Source: Macrostomum lignano (Eukaryota). Taken from it: a DNA stretch of 15,167 nt. The notes beneath the pieces are model-generated. The model made no database searches, was not told the origin of the DNA, and saw nothing but the letters and a program-made list of their open reading frames with translations. The DNA is taken from contig NIVC01005259.1 in assembly GCA_002269645.1 (NCBI GenBank), positions 1-15,167 of the forward strand, given 5' to 3'. Made by a program: the position numbers and the translations under genes. Positions 1 to 15,167 of the stretch are shown here, in pieces; position 1 is the first letter of the stretch; every line of letters starts with the position of its first letter.

Positions 1-499
1 CTTTGTTTGGCACTTGAGTTTCTCGAATATCCAAAGAGGCTTGGAGCAGATGCTGGTTTAAGCTACTGTATATTATACTATAATTTGTCCTTCCGGAAAT
101 TTCTAGAATTAAATAATTCATAATTATTGAATCGAACTTTCGCGAAGGTCACTACACTACTCGACTGTTTTAAAGAAGCATGCACTACAATAGAGCCTCA
201 GAAGCGCTATATATATAGGTGTATTTATAATTTTTTAAGCTTTTAATCTGTTAAATCTAGATATTTTAAGTAATTATGTCATTAAAAGCAACTTTGCAAC
301 TCGTTTTAAAATCTCTGAAGTTTTTATGCATAGCAGACATACTATAATTGGGCAAAGCTTGAGAAAAGGATCAGATGGGCTTCTAACTAATTTACTATCA
401 ACAAAAATTTTATTTTTAGCTTATAAGCTTAGGCCTTTAGTAGCTGTCATGACTAAGTTATAGCCCCATCATACTAAGACTTTAACTGCTAGTCTGCTA

Positions 500-503
500 C
501 TAG
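500..503 (-). other. CTAG 3' terminus followed by T (Helitron CTRR|T end)
   Basis: The minus strand reads hairpin, 15-nt spacer, CTAG, T. This matches the canonical Helitron 3' end and A^T target rule. CTAG alone is short, so support depends on its spacing from the hairpin. Confidence 0.65.
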
Positions 504-518
504 TTAGGTCGAAGTGCA

Positions 519-590
519 GTCCGGAAAAATTGCCAACGAGGAGCGAAGGCGAGAAGCGAGCGTAGCTCCTCGTTGGCAATTTTTCGCGAC
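519..590 (-). terminator. Terminal stem-loop (Helitron 3' terminator-type hairpin)
   Basis: Perfect 21-bp stem 524-544/565-585 (GAAAAATTGCCAACGAGGAGC), a 20-nt purine-rich loop, and a 3-bp GTC/GAC closure after a 2x2 mismatch. Confidence 0.85.
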
Positions 591-1565
591 AAACGAGACC
601 GAGATAATATGTCCCGGAGACTCCCCCAACGTAAAATCAACGTTTTAGAAAATAAAATTGATGCAGAGTTAAAACCACTTGAGATGAAACCATGTGTGAC
701 CCCTCTATGGACGTAAAACATTTAGGGCTACAAGATGTGTGACGTGAAAGTTCCATAGCAACGCGTCTTGGTTGCCATGGCAAACAAAAAAGTGACTTTT
801 TTTAGACCCGTCCAAATCTTGAATCTCAAAAAATAAGGATTCACAATATGGAGTCAAAAATTGATTGAACCCAACTTTTGGCGAATTTTCAGACCTTCAA
901 GACACTGATTGGTTATTTTCCGCTAAATGCTTACCTTGATAGTAATTCTGTAAAAGTGTGTTTTTTAAGTGTCAAAAAATGCGCATTTTTATCAACTTTC
1001 AACTGAGCTCTGTCATTCTAAACAATGGCACCTGGGACTCTTACATGACGCACGACTTTAACCAAGATACTCACTTTAACTGTACATTCGCACCTGTTAA
1101 TTACATTCGAATATTCGACGGGTAGGTATTCGAACCGAAATAAAGGAAATTCAACCTTGTTGCGAGACTCTAAAAAGTACATGAATGCGGTCATTTAGGT
1201 AAGATCTACATGTTTATAATACATTTTGAGCCGTTTCGTTGCACTGACTCTGAGCCATACACTGCTAAAGTCGATAAACGTGATTTAGGCTATTTTTATG
1301 TATTTTTCATGATACAAATGTACAAAAAATAAGAAACGACGACATGCTAGGAAAATCAGACTTTTTAGGCAAGGTGCACAACTAAATTGCGCACAATATG
1401 TATATTTTGAAATTTCGTCTTAGTTTATTGAAGTCGCTGCCGGTACAGAAATGTACTTTAACGACGGTACGGGGGCTTGCATATCGAACATACTTTTTAG
1501 CCTGTAACTTTTGAGCGGATTACCGGAGCGCGACGCGCTTGGTGTCATTGAACTACATTTTAGAT

Positions 1566-2620
1566 GTACTTTAATTTGAATGTATGTTCGCTGTCATTGC
1601 ACGATGCGTTGTACACCTCAGGTCAGGTCACGTGACTTGCTGGAAATGAAATAATGACTTTGTACCTATACTAAGGATAGGTGAAGCGTAAGAATGAACC
1701 AAAATTTGTACTTATTAGAAACACCTAGATGACTACTGTCAGAAAAAATGATATTCACGTCTGTCAGTTGCAAAATTTTGTTATAATTGACTTTTAAAAT
1801 CGAAAAACGTGATTTTGTGCAAAAACAACCTATATGAGCACACATAGGGTGAAAAATTTATTGATTTTCGCTATGAGGTTCTTAGCTTCCAAGAGCACTA
1901 TTGTGCCCAGTAAACACGTACAGATGACTGCTATCTTCGTTAGTGTGCGAAAATTCGTATTTTTACGCTAATAACATTTACCGAATTACGAGGTTCCGGT
2001 GTTATGCGTTTTTTTGCTATATTTCACGCTGCCATTTATTAACGATGCTACGCCAGGCCTTCAGTGTGGTGTCAATAGTTAGCATTTAAAAAGTGCTTTA
2101 ATTTGAGTGTATGTTCGCTGGCATTGCACGATGCGTTGTACACCTCAGGCCAGGTCACGTGACTTGCTGGAAATGAAATAATGACTTTGTACCTATACTA
2201 AGGATAGGTGAAGCATAAGAATGACCCATATTAGTACTTATTAGAAACATCTAGATGAATACTCTCAGAAAAAGTGACATTCACGTCTGTCAGTTGCAAA
2301 AAAAATTTTTAATTGACTCTCAAAATCGAAAAACGTGATTTTGTGCAAAAACAACCCATTTGAGCACTACATAGGGCGGAAAATATATTAATTTTCGCTA
2401 TGAGGTTCTTAGCTTCCAAGAGCACTATTGTGCCCAGTAAACACGTACAGATGACTGCCATCTTCGTTAGTGTGCGAAAATTCGTATTTTGACGCTATTA
2501 ACATTTTACCGAATTACGAGGTTCCGGTACTATGCGTTTTTTTGCTATATTTCACGCTGCCATTTATTAACTATCCTACGCCAGGCCTTCAGTGTAGTGT
2601 CAATAAATAGCATTTAGCAA
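1566..2620. repeat. Tandem duplication, 2 x ~527 bp, inside the left arm
   Basis: Units start GTACTTTAATTTGAATGTATG (1566) and GTGCTTTAATTTGAGTGTATG (2093). They are roughly 90% identical by eye. A third start, GTGCTTTAA, lies at 2621. Confidence 0.92.
1627..1636. promoter_or_regulatory. GTCACGTGAC palindrome (CLEAR/USF-type E-box), also at 2154-2163, 13163-13172 and 13690-13699
   Basis: Exact 10-bp palindrome, one per 527-bp unit. Motif match only. Confidence 0.35.
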
Positions 2621-4122
2621 GTGCTTTAAGATGACATCATGCGCATTGCGTTGCGTAAAAGTGTGGGTCCACAGTTTCGTAACAAGTTAAAATGACCTGA
2701 TTTCGCAAAAATCTTTAAAACAAAAAATACCAAATAGGTAACTAAAAAGCCTTTTGAAACTGAATAAAAAATGCACATAAAAGTGCTATTTTGTAACGTA
2801 AAAAGTCTTGCGTCCTGCAAAAATCTTCTATGGTGACTTTTTGGAGCCGTGAAGTGTAAAAACGTGCGCATTTTTAAAGCTGTTGAACTTACTTTTTGAG
2901 GTATATTTTGAAAATAGGCATTTTATAAATTGTATAACAAAATTTAATTGAAGAAAGCAATAAGGTAAAATAGAATTCGAAATTATTTAATTTTGAAATA
3001 ATTAAACTGTACATTTCAGTCGTTCTGTTCCTTATAATTTCTACAAAAATTTAAATTTAAATCGGTTATGTTAACAGTAGTTTATTGCTGTAGGACAAAT
3101 TTGACCCCAAATTTTCAAAGCAACTTATCTAAGCAAACGCTATCTAAATCTGAAATATTTTCAAGCTTCAATCTGTAGCTATAATATTCGGTTTTGTTAC
3201 GCTATTTATTCGTATCCTACTACATTATATATAATTATTGTACAATATATTATATTCTACAAGTACAAGTTTTAATTGTAATATATTCAATTGTTATCAG
3301 TTTTACACTGTAAGTGTAAGCTTCAAATTTTATTTGAAATATAACTGAAGTATAGTACTTTAATATTATTTTATAGCTAATTAATTGTATTCTGCCAAAT
3401 ATTTACGTTTTTTTTCTCTGCTTTGCTTTTTGCTCCATATTTTTATAAATTATAGTCATATTTACATATATCTTTTAAAAGTACTCATCCTTTCACATTT
3501 TATTTTGTAGTTATCAGTCAAATTTAACTTGAATTTTCCTTTTGTTTGCATAATTTTGACTTAAGACTTTAGTTTTGAAGTAAGTATTCTTTTTATTTCT
3601 TCATATGTTTAGCATAGTACAAATATCTGTAGTACTCTGCTTAATGGTAGAAGTTTGTGGACACTTTTTATAAATTCTGCTCAATTTATTATAAATTTAG
3701 CATTTTTGCTAGACAATATATACATGCCAATGCTCCTTATATCAAGCAATGCTTGAAAGTGCTAGACACTTAGTTTATGGTGAATTTTTACCAAGGGATG
3801 TTTTTTTGCTGATATAGAATTCCTAGAAGCATGTACAAAAACATGGAATATGCCTGAAAAAACTCTAGAAAATATGCACTAAATCCAAGAAAAAATGTTG
3901 AAAGCACAAAAACTACATGGCACACACCGCCTATATGCCAGTATATTATGCTGCAGCATATTAATCCACAATCCAGTAGCAGTGCTAGTGTTCGTAGTTT
4001 AACTAAATTTGCCACCAGAAAAGAGTTGAGTTAACTTGGTAAAGAGTAGCATGTTTTCTGTGTTTAGCTAATTAGTTTCTTTATCATTCTGAAATATTTA
4101 CTAACATGTTTATTTAGACAGG

Positions 4123-4201
4123 ATGGGCAACGACAAAAACAGCATCAAGGACAACACTAGCATTAACAAGGATACAAGTGCTTCTTCTGTTGCTGCCAAT
4201 A
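4123..4201 (+). CDS. Predicted first coding exon of RepHel (MGNDKNSIKDNTSINKDTSASSVAAN)
   Basis: ATG at 4123, then an open frame to a consensus donor GTAAGT at 4202. The phase-1 end matches the next exon (A+GT = Ser). Preceded by TACTAAC (4099-4105) and a CAG acceptor (4119-4121). Confidence 0.7.
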
Positions 4202-4421
4202 GTAAGTTTTGTACATTTGTTGCAACTTGCAGGTGATAGGTGCTACTTTCAGGAATAGTTTCAAAGCAATCCTACCTTTATTATTAATATTCACACCTTA
4301 GGAAACCAGCTTTTACTAGCATTCTTGGCTGCCCATTTGGGCAACAGACAAACTAAAAAGTTCCTGCACTACACAATTTATTTACCAAACAATAAATCTC
4401 AATTGTTCACACTATAACTCA

Positions 4422-4699
4422 CACTGAATAGTTCACAGGTAATTCTGTAAAAAAGTGTTTTTCAGATGTCTAAAAATGTGAATTTTTCAAACTCTTAACT
4501 GACGCAGCTCAAATCAATAGTTCACACTCAATAGTTTAGATTGAATAGTTTCGCCTGAATAGTTTTGACAGACAGAATAATTTCAACTGAATAGTTACAA
4601 CTGAATAGTTTAGACTTAATAATCTTGACTGAGTAGTTTTGACTGAATAGTGTGAACTCAATAGTTTCGACTGAGTAGTTTCGACTGAATAGTTTCGAC
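4422..4699. repeat. Degenerate 14-bp minisatellite, consensus ACTGAATAGTTTCG
   Basis: Repeated (A)CTGAATAGTTTCG-like units, clearest at 4515-4699 and interrupted at 4437-4513. Confidence 0.85.
4437..4513 (+). repeat. Diverged 77-bp fragment homologous to the inverted arm
   Basis: AGGTAATTCTGTAAAA...AACTGACGCAGCTCAAA aligns at about 80% (by eye) to ~941-1004 and to the reverse complement of ~14344-14420. Confidence 0.85.
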
Positions 4700-4916
4700 A
4701 AAGGGAATAAATTCAATTGGAATCTGACCTTGTTTGACAGATCATTAAAATAATTATAGAAACTCTATTTTCGAATGTTTAACACCCTTAGAATTTGAGC
4801 AGATTTAAGAAATTTTGACCACTGTATAATCAGTGCAAAATCTGCAATAGTTTAGAAAAAACGCTATCAAAATTGATCAAGAATGGCACGCTCTAGAGCG
4901 AAATAGATGGACAGAC

Positions 4917-4937
4917 ATATATATATATATATATATA
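4917..4937. repeat. (AT)10 microsatellite
   Basis: Directly visible dinucleotide run in the predicted intron. Confidence 0.95.
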
Positions 4938-4978
4938 GGTAGATTTATAAATTTCTTTTTTACTGTGACTTTAAACAG

Positions 4979-5350
4979 GTGCGAAAAAGTGCGGACGGCC
5001 GAAGAAGAAAAACTGGAGCCGCTCCAAGAATAATATTAAAGTTGCTGCTGTCGGTGATTTAACTGCTGGCGAAGAACAGATTCAAGAGCCAGATGTACAA
5101 CCGGAAGCTGCTGCTGCCTCTTCTATTGCCGCTGCTGGGACTAAAGCTGGTGCTTCTGCTGATGCTGCTGCTAAAACTGAGTCTGTGATTAAGCTGGACG
5201 AGGCTGGTCTGGCTGCCCTGCTAGCTGAACATGATGCTGCTCTGGCCGACGCTCTGGCTGCTTCGGAATACCCCGTGGTCGAAGGTGATGCTGAAGTGCC
5301 CAATTCTGGTGCTGCTTACAATGAGCAACTTATAGGCTACTTGAGTGCTG
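4979..5350 (+). CDS. Predicted second coding exon of RepHel (AT-hook-like KKCGRPKKK, then an Ala/acidic-rich linker)
   Basis: Acceptor TTTCTTTTTTACTGTGACTTTAAACAG ending at 4978, an open GC-richer frame of 372 nt, and donor GTGAGA at 5351. Phase 1 at both ends, giving an in-frame join G+AT = Asp with the main exon. Confidence 0.8.
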
Positions 5351-5535
5351 GTGAGAGTTTTATTTTTTATTGAATTTCTATGCATAGTACAAGTTAATTT
5401 TCTTTCTTACATCTGACTTTGCTTGCGAATATTGAAAATTAGATTTTAGTGTTTACGACTTGTGCAAAATACAATTAATGCTCAATTCCTTAAAATTATC
5501 ATACCTCACTGTTTAAGAGTTGTATTCTTTTACAG
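5351..5535 (+). other. Predicted GT-AG intron (185 nt)
   Basis: GTGAGA...TATTCTTTTACAG boundaries, AT-rich, phase-consistent. Confidence 0.8.
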
Positions 5536-8500
5536 ATGAAACAGGTGCTACTGCAATGGATTTTGCCGAAGGTCATGTAACTGCTGCTGTACAAGTCCAA
5601 CCTGTATGGGTTCCTTTTTCTTCGTGTCGCGTTGAGAATGTACGAGGTGACGGCAACTGTTTTTTCACGGCCATATTGAGACAATTACAAGAACTGCCAG
5701 GTTTTTCCGCCTATCAATCGCTAAGCGTAGAAGATTTTCGAGATGCGGTTGCTGCAGAATTCGAGCAATGGGTGCATCGCGATGTCAATAATCAGGAAAG
5801 AATTATGCAAACAGGACTGAATTGGGAAAAAGTGCGCGACGATACAAGGCGTCCCCGTATGTACGTGCCATGCGGAGTTCCAGAACTAATTGGTGAACTG
5901 TTGCGGCTAGAAGTGTTTATTTATCAGTCAAACATGCTTAATCTAGCGCGGCCTGGCCATTATTCCCGACCGAATATTGGAGAACGTTTGGCTACTATTC
6001 GATTGTTGTTTAATCCTGGTAGTCAACACTACGAAATCGTTCGTGTCAATGATTTGGAAGTTAATGAAGCAAGCTCAGTTCGGCCGACTGGCCAAGGAGA
6101 TTTGAGCGCCAAGAATGTGGAAATGCCCCCTCTCAACGAGAATGTTCATGTTGTCGAAGATCCTGTTGTAATGATGCCACCTCCAGCTCCACCAATGACG
6201 CCTTTTGAAAAGGTTGCAGACTGGACCCGAGTTCAAAGTAGGCATTGGAAGGGACGTTGTAGAAATCAAGCAAAGTCCTTGGAAAATAATACGAGTTTGT
6301 TTGCGCATCCGAATTCATATGAAGTGCTTCGGGATCGGAACAACTCTGTCTGGAATTGGAATGTCGATCTTGACGCGGAGGATAGCGCAGAGTCAGTTGA
6401 AATTGAGCATGTGTCAGAGTCAGTTAAAAGTGATCGTGTGTCAGAGTCCGTGCCATCAAATGTTCCGCGGCGCAGTCGGCGTAAAAAGGATGTTGGGAAG
6501 GCAAGTTGCGCTACGCGTCGGAGTAGTCGACTGAGCGCTAAAGCAAACACATTAGAGTCTGTGTCTGTTGCAGCCTCTAGTGTATCTGGTCAGAGCTTAT
6601 TGAGAAGAAGCAGTCGCACTCGGAGAGCACCATGTTGCAGTTGCATCGGTTGTGGCGACTCAGTTTCGGCGGTTTCAAGCGTTTCTTGCCATTTGGAAAA
6701 AGGAAGAGGTCGAGAAAAGAAGAGCGACGTTGTACCAAGTGCTCCTACTCGTCGCAGCGAGCGTTTGAAAAACCAGCAGCAAGTGGTCAACTATGCAAAT
6801 TCTTTACCACGGAAACAGAGATTGACAAACGCAGAAAATCATATCTGCGAACCCGTTCGATCGTCGCCTAGGAAGACGGCACCTTTGCAGCAGGAGCAGC
6901 AAGATAAACGTCAGTCTGATAATATTCCAGCTACTTCTACGTATTCATCACCACGAAAGACACGTGCTACTCAGGAGAAGCCTGATGAAGCGATCCGTTC
7001 GTCACCCAGAAAGCGGCCTACAATGGAGCAGCAGCCAGCTAAAGAAAATGTTCCGCAGAGCAGCACTTCAGAAGAGAGCGCTCAAGATGCTCCAATTGTT
7101 GAAGATGAAATCGGAGATCCTAATCTGCCAAAGTGCCTTCGCAATCCGTTCACAGACCAGTTCAAAAAGATGAGGCAAGACTTTTTCAATGAAAACATAA
7201 CAAAAGTATCACATTTGAAACAGTGCTACGTGTGTAGGGAAAAGTTTCCTGGAAAATATTTTAGCATCGATTCTGAAGACATGTGCGATCGTTGTTTCAG
7301 AGATGACAATGAGCCGAAATCGTTTAGCCAAGAAAACAATGCGATTCCGATGTTGGAGCAGCCAGAAGATTTGCAAGATTTGAGTGTAGCAGAGCAAATG
7401 TTGATTTCGCCAGTTTTGTCGGTTATTGTTGTGGTACAAATTTTTCCCCAAAAGCAAACAAAATCGAGAGGACACGGAATCATGTTGCCTCAAGATCAGT
7501 CGCACGTTTTGCGAGAGCTGCCAAGACGATCTCTGCCAGTTGTTTTAATGTACGACGAAAGAGCCCGTGTTCAGCCTGGAGAAGCGCAAAGCGGCACAAT
7601 GAACAATTTGCGAGTTCGACGCGACAAAGTGACTAATGCGATGCGCTATTTAATGGCAAACAACAAGTACTTTAGACAGTATCAGGTTTCAATGAATAAT
7701 GATGCGTTGCTACATCTGCCTGAAGATGGTTATGCTCATCAAGTAGAAGGTATGATTGTCGAAATGCAGTCTGACAATGAAGTGAATTTCGAGGCGGCAC
7801 AGCAAGAAGGCGGCTCAGCCAGAGCTGAGCGATTGCAGCAACAAGTAGAAAAAAATGCGGACGAGACGAACGAGCTCGAGGAAACAATTAGTTCGCTGTT
7901 GGAGACTCCTTTGCGTCGATTGGAATCGGCAGTACGAGACAAATTTTTGAGTGAAAAATTGAAATGGCCAGCAAGAAGCAACGAGCCGGTAAACGAATTT
8001 CAGGATGAAGGATATTTTACATTGGCTTATCCTCATCTCTTTCCGGATGGAGCAGGAGATTATAGTACGCCACGTAATTTTGGACTAAGTTTGGGCGACT
8101 ATGCAAAGCATTTGATGCAATTCCGGTGTCCAAGATTTCGTACCGATTTGCGGTTTAAATTTTACATTGAAAATATGGTGATGCGTTGGAGGGCGCTGGA
8201 AGTTGGTCGCGTGTTTGTACACGACAACAAGTATGCTGGATTAAGTGCCAAGGAAATGATTGAAGCACTAAATGACCCGGCAGTATTGGCTAGCGTGTCA
8301 GTTCGAGCATCAGATTTGCGAGGCACAAGCGCTTATTGGCAGAGTAAAGGACGGCAATTGGAAGCCATGATTCGAACGCTTGGTGTTCCTCATTTTTTCG
8401 TGACACTATCGGCAGCAGATGTACATTGGCCAGAGTTGCAGCATGCCTGGGGAATCGATGCAGAGCAATATGAAAGCAATGTAGAACTAAGAGCAGAAAT

Positions 8501-11500
8501 GTTGTCAAAGTTGCAAAAAGATCCCGGAATGGCAGACACTGTGTTTTGGTTGCGATTTGAAACATGTTTGAAACGTTTTTTGGTCGAGCACTGGAAAGTA
8601 AACGATTATTGGTTTCGCATAGAATATCAGAGTCGCGGAAGTCCACACGTTCACGGTTGCATTTGGATGCCAGATGGTGTTGATGTGACATCGAATACAT
8701 TGAATGCAGAAGAATTGACGAGCTTTGTTGACAAGTACATCTGTAGTTGGAATTTGGCCATGGACGAATCGGATTATGGAAATCAAGTTTTGAATGGCAG
8801 TTTAGCAGGTCAAGGTCATCCAGCTCAACTGAAACCGGAAGAGATTGAAAATGACAAGCAAGATTTGCAGTTAATTTCGCATTTGACAGAGAGGCACACT
8901 ATTTGCAGTAAAAAGTGCTTGCGAACAGTAAAAGGCAAACAAGAGTGCCGATTCAAGTATCCGCGCGAGCCGCAGGAAAAGACTGTTGCAAAGCGAGTAT
9001 CCCGTTTAAATTGGCAAGTTGAGACGCAGCGCAACGACGAGCGAATGATTTCTCACAGTCCGCAGTTGCTGTGCATGTGGAGAGCCAATGTCGATGTTCA
9101 AATGATTTCGTCCGTGAAGAATTTGATTCGCTATTTGATCAAGTATGCGACAAAAAGCGAAAAGGAGTCGGATTATATGGCGGAGCTGACAAAGCGTCTT
9201 CATAAGGAGTTGGAAGATAATGCAGAACAGAATGCCGATAACAATTTTCAGCGTAGCAACACTGCAAGGCGTGTTGTACAACAACACTTGATGGCGCAAG
9301 TTGGAGCGCGTGATTATTCGGCGCAAGAGGCAATGCATTTGCTATTGCAGACGTCAATGTACAAGGGTTCGCGAGAATTTGTTTTTGTTCAGACTGGCGA
9401 AACCCGCGCAGTGGAGGAAAAGGGTGTTTGCAGGAATAGTTGCGACAAGTATTCAAAGCGTGCAAAGAATTTGGAAAATGTAACAATGTTTCGTTTCTTT
9501 TCCGACTACTGTCTCAGCCCTAATGGGAGGTGCACAAAAAGGCCGAAACAAGTAGTTTTGCTAATCAGTCCATTTTTTCGACCGAATGAGCAATCAGACG
9601 AAAGACGCGAAGGCTATTATCGGCAGCAGGTTTTGTTGTACAGTTGTTGGCGAAATGAGCGAGAAGCCAAAGGTTTGCACACAAGCTGGCAGCAAGCGTA
9701 CGAAGCCATGCCTGCTGAGAATCGATGCGAGCTGCAGCTGCCCAATTTGGACGATTTGCGCAACGACGAAGCTGACGAAGAAGTCGAAGCAGTTGCGGAG
9801 CTACCCGAAATGACCAACGCAAATGCGCAATCTGCTGCTCAGCCAACTTATGAGCACGAAGAGCAAGAAGATTGGATGGTTGCAGTGGGGGCACTTCATC
9901 GCGAGAGAAATCTATTGGCCTGTCCAGAAGATCAATTGCCAAAGCCGCCAGAAAATTTTGACTGGAGCGCAGCTAGTGGCGGCCAGTTTCCAACGGTTGG
10001 AGAAGCAAAGGCGTTTTTAAGTAGCGACCTAAAACTTGGCGCAAGAGAGGTCGCTGACATGCCGATAAACAGTGTTGAATCGCTTAATGTTCGGCAGCGA
10101 GAAATGTACAACCTAATTGAAAGTCATTTGCAGCTTTCAAGACTAGCCGAAGAAAACCAAGGCGAAAAGCCGGAGCCTCTCAAAGCAATTTTGTATGGTA
10201 GCGCTGGAACTGGAAAAAGCTACTTGATTTCTACATTGCGTCGGTTGATTGGAGAATCAAGATGCAGAATTATGGCATCAACAGGCGTAGCCGCTTTCAA
10301 TATTGCAGGCGAAACTTTGCACTCGGCTTTGAAATTGAATGTAAATTTTAGTGCTGGTGTTGGCAAGAAATCCCTAATGGAGATGCAAGAGCAGTGGAAA
10401 GATGTGCGCTACATTTTTATTGACGAATTTAGCATGCTTGGCCAAAGGTTACTCCGTAAGGTGGATGCTCGTTTGCGCGAATTGTTTCCAGAACACAGTA
10501 AACAGAGTTTTGGTGGTCGATCTGTAATCCTAATTGGCGACGTGTTTCAATTGCCTCCAGTTTTGGACACGCAACTGTACGTTTACAATCCAAATCAAAA
10601 GAAGCACGATATATTGAAATCTGAAGGCTATAAATTGTACATGGAGTTCAAAAAGGTTGTGCATCTGACAGAACAAGTCCGACAAGCAAACGATACGGAA
10701 TTCGCCCAGTTGTTGGATAAACTTCGCGAAGGCAAGGCCGACGAAGCCTGCTGGAATTCGTTGATGAACAATTGTCGCGTCTATGCTCCCGACCTTTTGC
10801 CTGAAGGTTTCCAAAGCGGGTGTACATTTTTATATCACACTAACGAGGATGTGAGAAATCGCAACTACATGCTATTGGGAAAGATGGTTTCCGAATTGAA
10901 TCCTGTGCGGCAAATTAACGCAATTTGTAAAGGAGACGAAGCAAAATTGTGTGGCAAAAAGAAGGAACATAAAAAATCGGATACGAATCTGGAGAAGCGA
11001 CTCTATTTGTGTATTGGTGCTCGAGTAATGCTAACTAGAAATCTGTCAGTACGCAATGGACTTGTGAATGGATCAGTTGGAACTGTACGAGGAATTTGCT
11101 ACGCTCCTGGAAGGCAATCACCAAAGGATTGGCCAGATTGTATTTGGGTTGAATTTGACAATTATTCTGGCCCAGCAATGGGGGCAATTGTACAAGATAA
11201 TCGTGCAATTCGTGTAGTGCCAATTCTGTCAGTAACGAATGAAAAGTTTAAAGGAGGAGCCCAATTGTCGCGTCAACAATTTCCACTACGATTGGCTTGG
11301 GCTAGTACGATTCACAAGAGCCAAGGACTTACAATTCCAAAAGCGTACGTGGCGTTTAGCAAAGGAGGCGCCAGGAAAGCTATTCCAGCTGGATTATTTT
11401 ATACTGCGGTGAGTAGAGTTCGTGCATTTGCAGATTTGCGAGTATCAAGTTGCGATTACAACAATTTCGTGAGCCTTTTTTCTGCACAAAAAGTGCAGAC

Positions 11501-11564
11501 GCAGTTGCATGAGCAAAAGCGTTTGCTGAGAATGTGCTCATCCGCGAATTCTGATAGCCGCTAA
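5536..11564 (+). CDS. Helitron RepHel transposase, main exon (OTU - basic linker - C4 ZnF - DUF6570-like - HUH Rep - PIF1 helicase)
   Basis: About 6 kb with no stop codon. Rep motifs FFVTLSAADVHWPEL, RIEYQSRGSPHVH and YLIKYATK. Helicase motifs GSAGTGKS, IFIDEFS, GDVFQLPPV, QFPLRLAWASTIHKSQGLTI and YTAVSRVR. The 5' boundary is set at the acceptor TTCTTTTACAG (AG at 5534-5535), not at the TTG at 5520. Confidence 0.95.
5630..6040 (+). other. OTU-like cysteine protease domain of RepHel
   Basis: VRGDGNCFF motif (Cys codon 5658-5660) and distal QHYEIV (His codon 6027-6029), matching the OTU D-x-x-C...H pattern. Confidence 0.85.
7224..7295 (+). other. C4 zinc-finger-like motif (CYVC...CDRC)
   Basis: Two CxxC pairs just upstream of the DUF6570-like/Rep region. 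Confidence 0.65.
7350..7690 (+). other. DUF6570-like region
   Basis: The pattern LQDLSVAEQMLIS...GHGIMLPQ...LPR...LRVRRDKVTNAMRYLMANNKYF resembles, from memory, the domain found N-terminal to Helentron/Helitron2 Reps. Not confirmed by an HMM search. Confidence 0.6.
8380..9155 (+). other. HUH/Y2 Rep endonuclease core
   Basis: Motif 1 HFFVTLS, motif 2 EYQSRGSPHVH (8622-8654), motif 3 YLIKYATK (9132-9155) with both catalytic Tyr present. Confidence 0.92.
10180..11430 (+). other. PIF1-family (SF1B) DNA helicase domain
   Basis: Walker A GSAGTGKS (10197-10220), Walker B IDE (Asp codon 10422-10424), GDxxQLPPV, and motifs V/VI TIHKSQGLT and YTAVSRVR. Confidence 0.95.
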
Positions 11565-11577
11565 CTTGCTATTCTAA

Positions 11578-12280
11578 AGTCGGCAACTATTTAGTCAGCA
11601 ACTATCCATCCAGTCAGCATCCGTCCAGTCAGCAGCCGTCAGTCAGCAACAATCCAGTCAGCAACCATCCAGTCAGCAACCATCCAGTCAGCAAACATCC
11701 ATCCAGTCAGCAACCATTCGTCCAGTCAGCATCCATCCAGTCAGCAACCATCCAGTCAGCAACCATCCAGTCAGCATCCGTCCAGTCAGCAGCCATCCAG
11801 TCAGCAACCGTCCATCCAGTCAGCAACAATCCAGTCAGCAATCATCCAGTCAGCAACCATCCAGTCACAACCATCCAGTCAGCAGTCATCCAGTCAGCAA
11901 CCATCCGTCCAGTCAGCAACCATCCGTCCAGTCAGCAATCATCCGTCCAGTCAGCGACCATCCAGTCGGCAACCATCCAGTCACAACCATACGTCCAGTC
12001 AGCAACCATCCAGTCAGCAACCATCCAGTCAGCAACCATCCATCCATTCAGCAACCATCCAGTCAGCAACCATCCAGTCAGCAACCATCCAGTCAGCAAC
12101 CATTCGTCCAGCAACCATCCATCCAGTCAGCAACAATCCAGTCAGCAACCATCCAGTCAGCAAACATCCATCCAGTCAGCAACCATTCGTCCAGTCAGCA
12201 TCCATCCAGTCAGCAACCATCCAGTCAGCAACCATCCAGTCAGCATCCGTCCAGTCAGCAGCCATCCAGTCAGCAACCGT
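11578..12280. repeat. 15-bp minisatellite, consensus AGTCAGCAACCATCC, with variant units
   Basis: Begins 13 bp after the RepHel stop codon. Some units carry ATCC/GTCC insertions. The + strand is strongly C/A-rich. Confidence 0.97.
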
Positions 12281-12705
12281 TGTAGAAATTATAAGGAACA
12301 GAACGACTGAAATGTACAGTTTAATTATTTCAAAATTAAATAATTTCGAATTCTATTTTACCTTATTGCTTTCTTCAATTAAATTTTGTTATACAATTTA
12401 TAAAATGCCTATTTTCAAAATATACCTCAAAAAGTAAGTTCAACAGCTTTAAAAATGCGCACGTTTTTACACTTCACGGCTCCAAAAAGTCACCATAGAA
12501 GATTTTTGCAGGACGCAAGACTTTTTACGTTACAAAATAGCACTTTTATGTGCATTTTTTATTCAGTTTCAAAAGGCTTTTTAGTTACCTATTTGGTATT
12601 TTTTGTTTTAAAGATTTTTGCGAAATCAGGTCATTTTAACTTGTTACGAAACTGTGGACCCACACTTTTACGCAACGCAATGCGCATGATGTCATCTTAA
12701 AGCAC

Positions 12706-13760
12706 TTGCTAAATGCTATTTATTGACACTACACTGAAGGCCTGGCGTAGGATAGTTAATAAATGGCAGCGTGAAATATAGCAAAAAAACGCATAGTACC
12801 GGAACCTCGTAATTCGGTAAAATGTTAATAGCGTCAAAATACGAATTTTCGCACACTAACGAAGATGGCAGTCATCTGTACGTGTTTACTGGGCACAATA
12901 GTGCTCTTGGAAGCTAAGAACCTCATAGCGAAAATTAATATATTTTCCGCCCTATGTAGTGCTCAAATGGGTTGTTTTTGCACAAAATCACGTTTTTCGA
13001 TTTTGAGAGTCAATTAAAAATTTTTTTTGCAACTGACAGACGTGAATGTCACTTTTTCTGAGAGTATTCATCTAGATGTTTCTAATAAGTACTAATATGG
13101 GTCATTCTTATGCTTCACCTATCCTTAGTATAGGTACAAAGTCATTATTTCATTTCCAGCAAGTCACGTGACCTGGCCTGAGGTGTACAACGCATCGTGC
13201 AATGCCAGCGAACATACACTCAAATTAAAGCACTTTTTAAATGCTAACTATTGACACCACACTGAAGGCCTGGCGTAGCATCGTTAATAAATGGCAGCGT
13301 GAAATATAGCAAAAAAACGCATAACACCGGAACCTCGTAATTCGGTAAATGTTATTAGCGTAAAAATACGAATTTTCGCACACTAACGAAGATAGCAGTC
13401 ATCTGTACGTGTTTACTGGGCACAATAGTGCTCTTGGAAGCTAAGAACCTCATAGCGAAAATCAATAAATTTTTCACCCTATGTGTGCTCATATAGGTTG
13501 TTTTTGCACAAAATCACGTTTTTCGATTTTAAGAGTCAATTATAACAAAATTTTGCAACTGACAGACGTGAATATCATTTTTTCTGACAGTAGTCATCTA
13601 GGTGTTTCTAATAAGTACAAATTTTGGTTCATTCTTACGCTTCACCTATCCTTAGTATAGGTACAAAGTCATTATTTCATTTCCAGCAAGTCACGTGACC
13701 TGACCTGAGGTGTACAACGCATCGTGCAATGACAGCGAACATACATTCAAATTAAAGTAC
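12706..13760. repeat. Mirror copy of the 2 x ~527 bp tandem duplication in the right arm
   Basis: Reverse complement of 1566-2620. Confidence 0.92.
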
Positions 13761-14310
13761 ATCTAAAATGTAGTTCAATGACACCAAGCGCGTCGCGCTC
13801 GGTAATCCGCTCAAAAGTTACAGGCTAAAAAGTATGTTCGATATGCAAGCCCCCCGTACCGTCGTTAAAGTACATTTCTGTACCGGCAGCGACTTCAATA
13901 AACTAAGACGAAATTTCAAAATATACATATTGTGCGCAATTTAGTTGTGCACCTTGCCTAAAAAGTCTGATTTTCCTAGCATGTCGTCGTTTCTTATTTT
14001 TTGTACATTTGTATCATGAAAAATACATAAAAATAGCCTAAATCACGTTTATCGACTTTAGCAGTGTATGGCTCAGAGTCAGTGCAACGAAACGGCTCAA
14101 AATGTATTATAAACATGTAGATCTTACCTAAATGACCGCATTCATGTACTTTTTAGAGTCTCGCAACAAGGTTGAATTTCCTTTATTTCGGTTCGAATAC
14201 CTACCCGTCGAATATTCGAATGTAATTAACAGGTGCGAATGTACAGTTAAAGTGAGTATCTTGGTTAAAGTCGTGCGTCATGTAAGAGTCCCAGGTGCCA
14301 TTGTTAGAAT

Positions 14311-14356
14311 GACGCAGCTCAAAGGTCGCGCTGACGCGCGACCTTTGAGCTGCGTC
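14311..14356. other. Perfect 21-bp-stem, 4-nt-loop hairpin inside the right arm
   Basis: GACGCAGCTCAAAGGTCGCGC-TGAC-GCGCGACCTTTGAGCTGCGTC. Confidence 0.95.
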
Positions 14357-14574
14357 AGTTGAAAGTTGATAAAAATGCGCATTTTTTGACACTTAAAAAC
14401 ACACTTTTACAGAATTACCTATCAAGGTAAGCATTTAGCGGAAAATAACCAATCAGTGTCTTGAAGGTCTGAAAATTCGCCAAAAGTTGGGTTCAATCAA
14501 TTTTTGACTCCATATTGTGAATCCTTATTTTTTGAGATTCAAGATTTGACGGGTCTAAAAAAAGTCACTTTTTT

Positions 14575-14609
14575 GTTGCCATGGCAACCAAGACGCGTTG
14601 CTATGGAAC
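14575..14609. promoter_or_regulatory. Two adjacent RFX X-box-like motifs (mirror copies at 750-785)
   Basis: Perfect palindrome GTTGCCATGGCAAC (14575-14588) and GTTGCTATGGAAC (14597-14609). Motif match only; no functional evidence. Confidence 0.4.
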
Positions 14610-14767
14610 TTTCACGTCACACATCTTGTAGCCCTAAATGTTTTACGTCCATAGAGGGGTCACACATGGTTTCATCTCAAGTGGTTTTAACTCTGCATCA
14701 ATTTTATTTTCTAAAACGTTGATTTTACGTTGGGGAGTCTCCGGGACATCTTATCTCGGTCTCGTTT

Positions 14768-14808
14768 GTCCGGAAAAATTGCCAACGAGGAGCGAAGCGA
14801 GCGAAGCG
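14768..14808 (+). repeat. Truncated copy of the terminal hairpin, in direct orientation relative to 519-560
   Basis: GTCCGGAAAAATTGCCAACGAGGAGCGAAG is identical to 519-548 on the + strand, although the adjoining arm is inverted. Confidence 0.9.
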
Positions 14809-15167
14809 TCAGTCAGCAACAATCCAGTCAGCAACCATCCAGTCAGCAACACATCCAGTCAGCAAACATCCATCCAGTCAGCAACCATTCGTCAGTCAGC
14901 ATCCATCCAGTCAGCAACCATCCAGTCAGCAACCATCCAGTCAGCATCCGTCCAGTCAGCAGCCATCCAGTCAGCAACCGTCCATCCAGTCAGCAACAAT
15001 CCAGTCAGCAATCATCCAGTCAGCAACCATCCAGTCACAACCATCCAGTCAGCAGTCATCCAGTCCAGCAACCATCCGTCCAGTCAGCAACCCATCCGTC
15101 CAGTCAGCAATCATCCGTCCAGTCAGCGACCATCCAGTCGGCAACCATCCAGTCACAACCATACGTC
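14807..15167. repeat. Second, direct copy of the 15-bp minisatellite (copy of ~11637-11995), running off the window
   Basis: Same order of variant units (AACAATCC, AAACATCCATCC, AACCATTCGT, AGCAGCCATCC, GTCACAACC, GCGACC, GTCGGCAACC, ATACGTC). Confidence 0.95.

Follow-up and report, generated by a model that had tools for sequence, protein, structure and literature searches.

Organisation of the Locus

The window analysed here is the entire contig NIVC01005259.1 of the Macrostomum lignano assembly GCA_002269645.1 (15,167 bp), and it holds the 5′ two-thirds of a single copy of an autonomous rolling-circle transposon of about 17–21 kb, in which one gene for a combined HUH Rep and Pif1 helicase protein (RepHel) lies between two long inverted arms. 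For comparison, 21 further loci with the same element were fetched by way of the RepHel protein, about 470 kb in total. The preliminary description of the window had taken the two arms for the hairpin-ended inverted terminal repeats (ITRs) of an unusual Helitron. After comparison with the other loci, the window is very probably an ordinary copy of the Helitron2/Helentron lineage that has suffered a one-off duplication-inversion, and the arms are not its termini.

First of all, the gene itself is intact, and its assignment as a Helitron-type HUH Rep/Pif1 helicase is borne out by its domains. The open reading frame (ORF) 5520–11564 is uninterrupted and is matched in Pfam by Helitron_like_N (1e-29), PIF1 (7e-27) and DUF6570. 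The catalytic motifs are all present, that is, the HUH motif (HVH) at 8646–8654, the two tyrosines within YLIKYATK at 9132–9155 and the Walker A motif GSAGTGKS at 10197–10220, which places the protein in the Helitron superfamily. Among the PDB matches, Pif1 helicases reach 2e-32, and Helraiser (7lcc) reaches 2e-14 over the helicase region. At the N-terminus, the Pfam hits to OTU (E 0.05) and otubain (E 0.003) are both below threshold; the putative OTU-like domain is proposed from the DGNCFF...HYE motifs (DGNCFF at 5649–5666) and from a 49%-identical paralogue annotated as PF02338. Past the helicase nothing was found by Pfam, and about 60 aa lie between UvrD_C_2 and the stop of the ORF, leaving no C-terminal endonuclease. 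The nearest homologues outside Macrostomum, with 23–26% identity, carry OTU and Exo_endo_phos (AP-endonuclease) domains.

The near-identical inverted arms were likewise found as described, 565–3046 being paired with 12280–14793 across a spacer of 9233 nt. In a gapped alignment, 4 substitutions separate the two arms, along with about 8 single-base indels in homopolymers and a palindrome of about 36 nt that only the right arm has (identity about 99.5%), and an inverted match this long and this identical is far beyond chance. The left arm is contiguous with the gene at 99.8–100% identity (mostly 99.9%) in every related locus that extends there, and it is the family's ordinary 5′ region. Within it, 1540–2634 is a 527-bp tandem repeat of about 2.1 copies that are 88–95% identical, which is seen again at 12692–13786.

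The Right Arm as an Internal Inverted Duplicate

The right arm lies inside the satellite of the element. Its site has the layout of satellite 1–715, inverted 545–3046 and satellite from 73 to the end of the array, so that 643 nt of satellite are duplicated around it. What follows was read from locus L022, the first 7232 nt of contig NIVC01000174.1, which equals window 7914–15167 with 36 single-base indels and 0 substitutions. Since there are no substitutions and the junctions are the same, L022 is an overlapping contig of the same locus. Past the right arm, L022 continues with about 6.5 kb of satellite, which runs to the end of the array, and then with the usual 1.06-kb tail; this makes the right arm internal and puts the true 3′ end about 7.5 kb beyond the end of the window. 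It had been assumed that the arms bracket the element, but the right arm has the same 15/19-nt satellite before and after it, and the real 3′ end lies further on, and so the span 500–14808 is not an element. The coordinates of all features are collected in Table 1.

Table 1. Features of the window, with positions counted from the first nucleotide of the contig.
Feature	Position	Strand	Description
Host flank	1..499	.	Unique to the locus; an extra CTAGT 11 nt upstream of the junction
5′ terminus	500..518	+	CTAGTT, then the 13-nt 5′ asymmetric terminal inverted repeat (ATIR) AGGTCGAAGTGCA (506–518); identical in 10 copies beside unique flanks
5′ hairpin	519..590	+	Stem arm A 519–544, loop 545–564, stem arm A′ 565–590
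Native 5′ non-coding region (left arm)	591..3046	+	Adjoins the RepHel gene in L002–L016 and L018
AT-rich 5′ non-coding region, unduplicated	3047..4122	+	Colinear with other copies; GC content 0.24–0.31
RepHel exon 1	4123..4203	+	tblastn of the 2159-aa model P0012, residues 1–27 at 100%
Intron 1 features	4432..4699	+	Arm-like fragment, then a 14-nt tandem repeat (repeat search, TRF)
RepHel exon 2	4981..5358 (tblastn limits)	+	P0012 residues 28–153 at 98%
RepHel exon 3	5523..11564	+	OTU-like domain, DUF6570, HUH Rep, Pif1 helicase; intact to the stop
Satellite, first 715 nt	11565..12279	+	TRF; 100% identical to the start of the intact 5.2–6-kb arrays of L006, L007, L008 and L020
Junction J1	12278..12281	.	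Satellite ...CAACCG joined to TTGTAGAA (arm position 3046); microhomology 1 nt (T)
Inverted duplicate (right arm)	12280..14808	-	Element nt ~46–2547 = window 545–3046; 99.8% to the 5′ arms of other copies
Junction J2	14807..14809	.	Hairpin loop ...GAAGCGAGCGAAGCG joined to TCAGTCAGC (satellite position ~75); microhomology 2 nt (CG)
Satellite restart	14809..15167	+	Array position ~73–75; 98.9% copy of 11637–11995

The outer end of the right arm is also not a copy of the outer end of the left arm. The two had been described as carrying the same stem-loop, but only the left one folds (519–590, z −6.8), while the right one, taken from 14768–14808 into the satellite, has no fold (z +1.4). The right arm holds the 48-nt palindrome at 14310–14357, stem arm A at 14768–14793 and nucleotides 1–15 of the loop (14794–14808); it is without the 5′ terminus (the terminal 45 nt), the ATIR, the second stem arm and any 3′ terminus. 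With these parts missing, the inverted segment cannot be a mobile unit.

The preliminary description had proposed a Helitron-derived replicon with 2.5-kb hairpin-ended ITRs and a linear, fold-back or rolling-hairpin life cycle like that of parvoviruses. The 2.5-kb inverted arms around an HUH Rep gene and the strong hairpin at the left end are what such a replicon would have, and three independent junctions (J2 of the window, the second copy in L006, and L008) look hairpin-capped or flipped. However, the right arm is not a terminus, with satellite, tail and the real 3′ end after it, and it has lost half of the hairpin. The helicase is a Pif1 of superfamily 1 (SF1) rather than the superfamily 3 (SF3) helicase of parvoviral Reps. 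Moreover, a check for both arms in other RepHel copies, which the same description had asked for, gave a single arm in 16 of the 16 other tail-reaching loci; these have Helitron2-type asymmetric ends at unique chromosomal sites, and their satellites run uninterrupted, so that by that description's own terms the idea is refuted. Variants common to both arms of the window yet absent from 10 other copies were looked for and none was found, which argues against homogenisation of the ITR type and says nothing about the source copy of the right arm. A life cycle of this kind is thus extremely improbable for the element, whose ends are the ordinary ones of Helitron2 with unique flanks.

As to the differences between the arms, the right arm resembles the family consensus, and private changes are found in the left arm. 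The right arm and all other copies have a perfect palindrome of 48 nt (22-bp stem, free energy (dG) −32 kcal/mol), and its absence at about 1003–1011 is a deletion private to the left arm. These private changes, including the loss of the palindrome, may be real or may be consensus errors.

Another possibility is that the inverted arm is a product of PacBio reads that were chimeric or wrongly joined, in a contig that is small and of low coverage. The whole 15-kb contig is almost all repeat, satellites are hard to assemble, and the window has many single-base indels against both the overlapping contig and the family consensus, all of which would suit such an artefact. But the second contig, represented by L022, has the identical structure with both junctions and goes on for another 6.4 kb, and a chimera would require two junctions within one read. 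Both junctions carry microhomology, one breakpoint coincides to the nucleotide with that of an independent rearrangement in the 75-kb contig of L006, and the phase of the satellite (1–715, then 73 to the end) is that of an orderly duplication. An assembly artefact is accordingly considered quite unlikely.

A further candidate is a non-autonomous element in its own right, which would have inserted itself backwards into this copy's satellite and so produced the right arm; the boundaries of the inverted segment are sharp, and Helitron2/Helentron families often spawn such derivatives (PMC4067079). Against this stand the termini, for the segment has neither the 5′ terminus with its ATIR and complete hairpin nor the 3′ ATIR, hairpin and CTAG, and the target duplication of 643 nt that flanks it is not a kind made by Helitrons. 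In addition, in the roughly 470 kb of fetched loci, a sample biased to RepHel copies, the arm is always the 5′ region of such a copy, except for the inverted form, which is seen only in L022, that is, at the same locus. This explanation is very unlikely.

The duplication-inversion agrees with one half of an alternative that had been offered at the outset, namely that an inverted duplication had placed a second 3′ end upstream of the gene. There is indeed an inverted duplication, but no second 3′ end: the upstream arm is the native 5′ region and the downstream arm is the extra one.

Termini, Satellite and Tail of the Family

Window 1004–12280 was compared with 14 other loci, with identities of 99.8–100%, mostly 99.9%. 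The order of parts in the family is (CTAG)TT, the 13-nt 5′-ATIR, a hairpin with a 26-bp stem, about 3.5 kb of non-coding sequence, a three-exon OTU-Rep-Pif1 gene, the satellite and the tail.

Nine other copies are complete at the 5′ end, and the window becomes homologous to them from 498–500, while all flanks differ; that is to say, 10 copies start with CTAGTTAGGTCGAAGTGCA plus the hairpin beside unrelated neighbouring sequence. The 5′ hairpin of the window has a 26-bp stem with dG −29.1 kcal/mol and z −6.8 (DNA fold), and in the consensus copy L005 it reaches dG −32.9 kcal/mol and z −8.9 (DNA fold). The left flanks of the 10 copies end in N-CTAG, where N is A in six, G in two, C in one and T in one. 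If CTAG is target sequence, the true first base of the element may be 504 (TT...).

At the other end, the tail of 1064 bp is common to 16 loci and ends with ...TGCACTTCGACCT-GCT-AAGGTG-GCA-CACCTT-CAATCTAG, followed by T. The 5′-ATIR AGGTCGAAGTGCA and TGCACTTCGACCT are reverse complements of each other; the latter stops 26 nt short of the 3′ end, a few bases ahead of a short hairpin. This 6-bp hairpin (AAGGTG/CACCTT) is weak when taken alone (z −1.3), and after it come CTAG and the T. The host base after the 3′ end is T in all 16 loci, which have 15 distinct right flanks. L005:21790 and L019:12916 share their right flank, being the same locus or allelic or homeologous copies, and contig counts therefore overstate the number of independent insertions. 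In the copies with both ends (L005, L006, L008, L013 and L018), no direct repeat between left and right flanks was found by eye. CTAGT motifs recur in the host just 5′ of two insertions (window 470–500 and L013:1240–1270), and this recurrence, at two sites only, suggests a fit with a CTAG^T target preference.

The satellite has a unit of 15/19 nt, CCAGTCAGCAACCAT, with a longer repeat of about 480–500 nt within the array. Its length differs from 1.5 to 6.5 kb among copies that are otherwise 99.8–100% identical (e.g., L002:10033–16011), the uninterrupted satellites of the other copies measuring 1.5–6 kb. Several contigs stop within the satellite, which probably breaks the assembly.

Origin of the Rearrangement

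The element would move as a Helitron: the HUH/Y2 Rep would nick the top strand at the 5′ end, the Pif1 helicase would peel the nicked strand 5′ to 3′, and the 3′ signals would end the reaction. Standard rolling-circle movement of this kind is inferred from the intact motifs, the asymmetric ends, the lack of a target-site duplication and the near-identical copies at different sites. The inverted arm would have no part in transposition, and the likely cause of its presence is an error of replication or repair rather than a transposition event.

Two routes to the arrangement can be proposed. In the first, a strand being synthesised through the satellite would switch to the single-stranded top strand of the 5′ region at 3046; the copying would run back to the folded hairpin and stall in the loop, and the strand would then re-enter the satellite 643 nt upstream, a course of two microhomology-mediated template switches. 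In the second, a fragment terminated by a hairpin that had been opened in its loop would be captured at a break in the satellite. One end of the inverted segment is in the 5′ hairpin loop, and the other is at an AT-rich palindromic spot.

The window is not the only rearranged copy. Six others, L006, L007, L011, L013, L015 and L016, have partial duplications in direct orientation, built as [5′ end...X][restart...]. The point X is scattered over 1641–5633, whereas the restart always falls within one of two places, the 5′ hairpin and the internal 48-nt palindrome. J2 of the window and the second copy in L006 break after the identical loop nucleotide (after GAAGCGAGCGAAGCG) with the loop flipped, and L008, which is full length, has a flipped loop and a perfected stem. 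Judged by these positions, the clustering of breakpoints marks the two 5′ palindromes as an apparent rearrangement hotspot. The breakpoint sites lie at L006:2788–2830, L008:1748–1824, L007:~2153–2167, L015:~6406–6433, L016:~6291–6433, L011:~5098 and L013:~4224.

Several other candidates were rejected. A simple insertion into the satellite does not agree with the array, which restarts 643 nt upstream of the interruption; nested insertion behind the six direct partial duplications would leave a remainder of the host copy after the 3′ end, and there is none; and a palindromic PacBio read with a missed adapter would give a simple palindrome about one centre, which the structure is not.

Rearrangements associated with palindromes and quasipalindromes, such as template switching, microhomology-mediated break-induced replication (MMBIR), fork stalling and template switching (FoSTeS) and the repair of hairpin-capped breaks, offer an apparent analogy. 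The likeness would lie in the breakpoints in hairpin loops and stems, the microhomology of 1–2 nt, the duplication-inversion itself, the inverted loop with perfected stem in L008, and the deletion of one palindrome. A possible difference is that the events here took place in a transposon with a single-stranded intermediate, and they may arise during transposition instead of in the replication of the chromosome.

Some points weigh against the duplication-inversion and its proposed origin. At 15 and 26.7 kb, the two contigs that show the arrangement are small, and the same reads may underlie both, which leaves a small probability of an assembly error; the occurrence of the arm was judged only from loci retrieved through the RepHel protein. 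The mechanism is a proposal read from junction anatomy alone. Finally, the inverted arm ends in a loop of top-strand sense, whereas its body has bottom-strand sense, and because of this mismatch the simple model with two switches needs either a flipped-hairpin template, as in L008, or an extra switch within the hairpin.

Classification of the Element

A literature search for a described Macrostomum Helitron returned nothing relevant, and the element was compared with the known systems by its ends and domains. Helitron2 elements have hairpins at both ends and an asymmetric terminal inverted repeat of 8–15 bp, whose 5′ copy is 0–2 bp from its end and whose 3′ copy lies about 20–30 bp from the other end, 5′ of the hairpin (PMC3627910; PMC5148889). 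In Helentrons and HINEs, internal tandem repeats and OTU domains are known (PMC4067079). By its ends and domains the present element is best classed as Helitron2-like or proto-Helentron-like, and since it has no C-terminal endonuclease it is not a Helentron in the strict sense.

The agreement with Helitron2 (Bao & Jurka 2013, PMC3627910; FoHeli of Fusarium, PMC5148889) covers the single RepHel without an endonuclease, the hairpins at both ends, the 13-nt asymmetric repeat, the lack of a target-site duplication (by eye, in five copies) and the near-identical copies, which indicate recent activity. Of the two hairpins, the 5′ one is strong (dG −29 to −33 kcal/mol, z −6.8 to −8.9) and the 3′ one is weak alone. 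The 5′ copy of the asymmetric repeat stands 2 nt from the end if the element starts at TT, or 6 nt if it starts at CTAG, and the 3′ copy 26 nt. But the element is larger (17–21 kb versus 5–11 kb), its 5′ hairpin is very long (26-bp stem, loop of about 21 nt) and adjoins the ATIR rather than including it, and it has an OTU-like domain fused to RepHel and a multi-kb internal satellite. Furthermore, its 3′ CTAG with host T is in the style of canonical Helitrons, and the targets TTTT^T/C, or TNAT^A in fungi, which are reported for Helitron2 along with a 5′-T start, seem not to be those used here.

With Helentrons and HINE/DINE-1 (Thomas et al. 2014, PMC4067079) it shares subterminal inverted repeats, a 3′ palindrome, internal micro- or minisatellite and tandem repeats, which there sometimes make up much of the element, and the association with an OTU cysteine protease. 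Its nearest homologues outside Macrostomum also combine OTU with an AP-endonuclease domain, as Helentrons do, which is an indirect hint of kinship. It differs in lacking the C-terminal AP-endonuclease (by Pfam), the TT target and T-runs at the boundary; if the element starts at CTAG, the preceding base is other than T in 9 of the 10 copies.

Canonical Helitron1 elements run from 5′-TC to CTRR-3′, have one hairpin, at the 3′ end, and no terminal inverted repeat, and insert at A^T. With Helitron1 (Helraiser) the element has in common the HUH/Y2 Rep and Pif1, a 3′ CTRR (here CTAG) preceded at 8 nt by a short hairpin and followed by host T, and host A before the 5′ end in 6 of 10 copies. However, its 5′ end is CTAGTT or TTAGG rather than TC, it has the 5′ hairpin and the ATIR, and its protein matches Helraiser weakly (E 2e-14 over the helicase).

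The resemblance to parvoviruses and densoviruses comes down to the HUH nuclease, one strong terminal hairpin near the 5′ side of the HUH gene, and the occurrence of both hairpin orientations, like flip and flop, among copies (L008, L006 and the right arm of the window). In contrast to the viruses, hairpins do not cap both physical ends, the second arm being internal and truncated, and the copies are integrated in chromosomes with asymmetric ends and encode an SF1 Pif1 instead of an SF3 helicase.

The Sister Family and the 5′ Hairpin Loop

A sister RepHel family was found at L023 (contig NIVC01000521.1), with a protein identity of 46–49%. It has the same terminal plan (L023:319–410, 20640–20790) with unrelated ATIR and stem sequences: its ends have (CTAG)TT and an 11-nt ATIR, GTGGGACGATG / CATCGTCCCAC, at the same positions, its 5′ stem is 21–22 bp, and its 3′ hairpin of 7 bp (GAAGACG/CGTCTTC, in the same position) is followed by ATTCACTAG. 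The core of the 5′ hairpin loop, GCGAGCGAAGCGAG, is kept in the sister family, while the stem sequences are unrelated and co-vary. In L023, the 3′ end of one element abuts the next 5′ end with a single CTAG between them, which suggests that the element may start at TT (window 504) and that its target may be CTAG^T.

Because the loop core GCGAGCGAAGCGAG is conserved and two independent breaks fall at the same loop nucleotide, it may be asked whether the 5′ hairpin is an active processing site, beyond its role as a recognition fold; such a function is tentative and rather unlikely. In the J2 end, the second copy in L006 and L008, a bottom-sense body is joined to a top-sense stem arm and loop. 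Such flipped-loop junctions may match the footprint of a hairpin-capped end that was opened in the loop, or that of a template switch within the hairpin. If the idea were true, transposition or second-strand synthesis in Helitron2 would pass through hairpin-capped or loop-nicked 5′ intermediates, made by Rep or by the host, and the clustered duplications of the family would be failed products of such intermediates.

Significance of the Family

The ITR-like picture came from one rearranged copy that was seen in a contig ending short of the real 3′ end, and with its explanation a false lead, the supposed rolling-hairpin Helitron, is removed. In its place stands the full anatomy of a very young Helitron2-type family of about 20 kb in a model animal of regeneration. 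At least 16 insertions are 99.8–100% identical across the compared stretch, and the family is probably still active. The multi-kb satellite borne by the element has a bearing on the seeding of satellites by the Helitron lineage and on why this genome is hard to assemble. In addition, with its palindrome-clustered breakpoints and the conservation of the loop across families, the family is natural material for studying the role of the 5′ hairpin in Helitron2.

Other Features of the Window

An Rfam scan of the whole window gave no family at gathering score. In the upstream part of the gene, the annotated gene start of the contig is 4123, and the splice sites of exon 2, read from the sequence, are at about 4970 and 5353. 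In intron 1, 4432–4513 is 84% identical to arm 935–1010, covering the first half of the internal palindrome, and 4526–4699 consists of about 12 copies of the 14-nt tandem repeat ACTGAATAGTTTCG.

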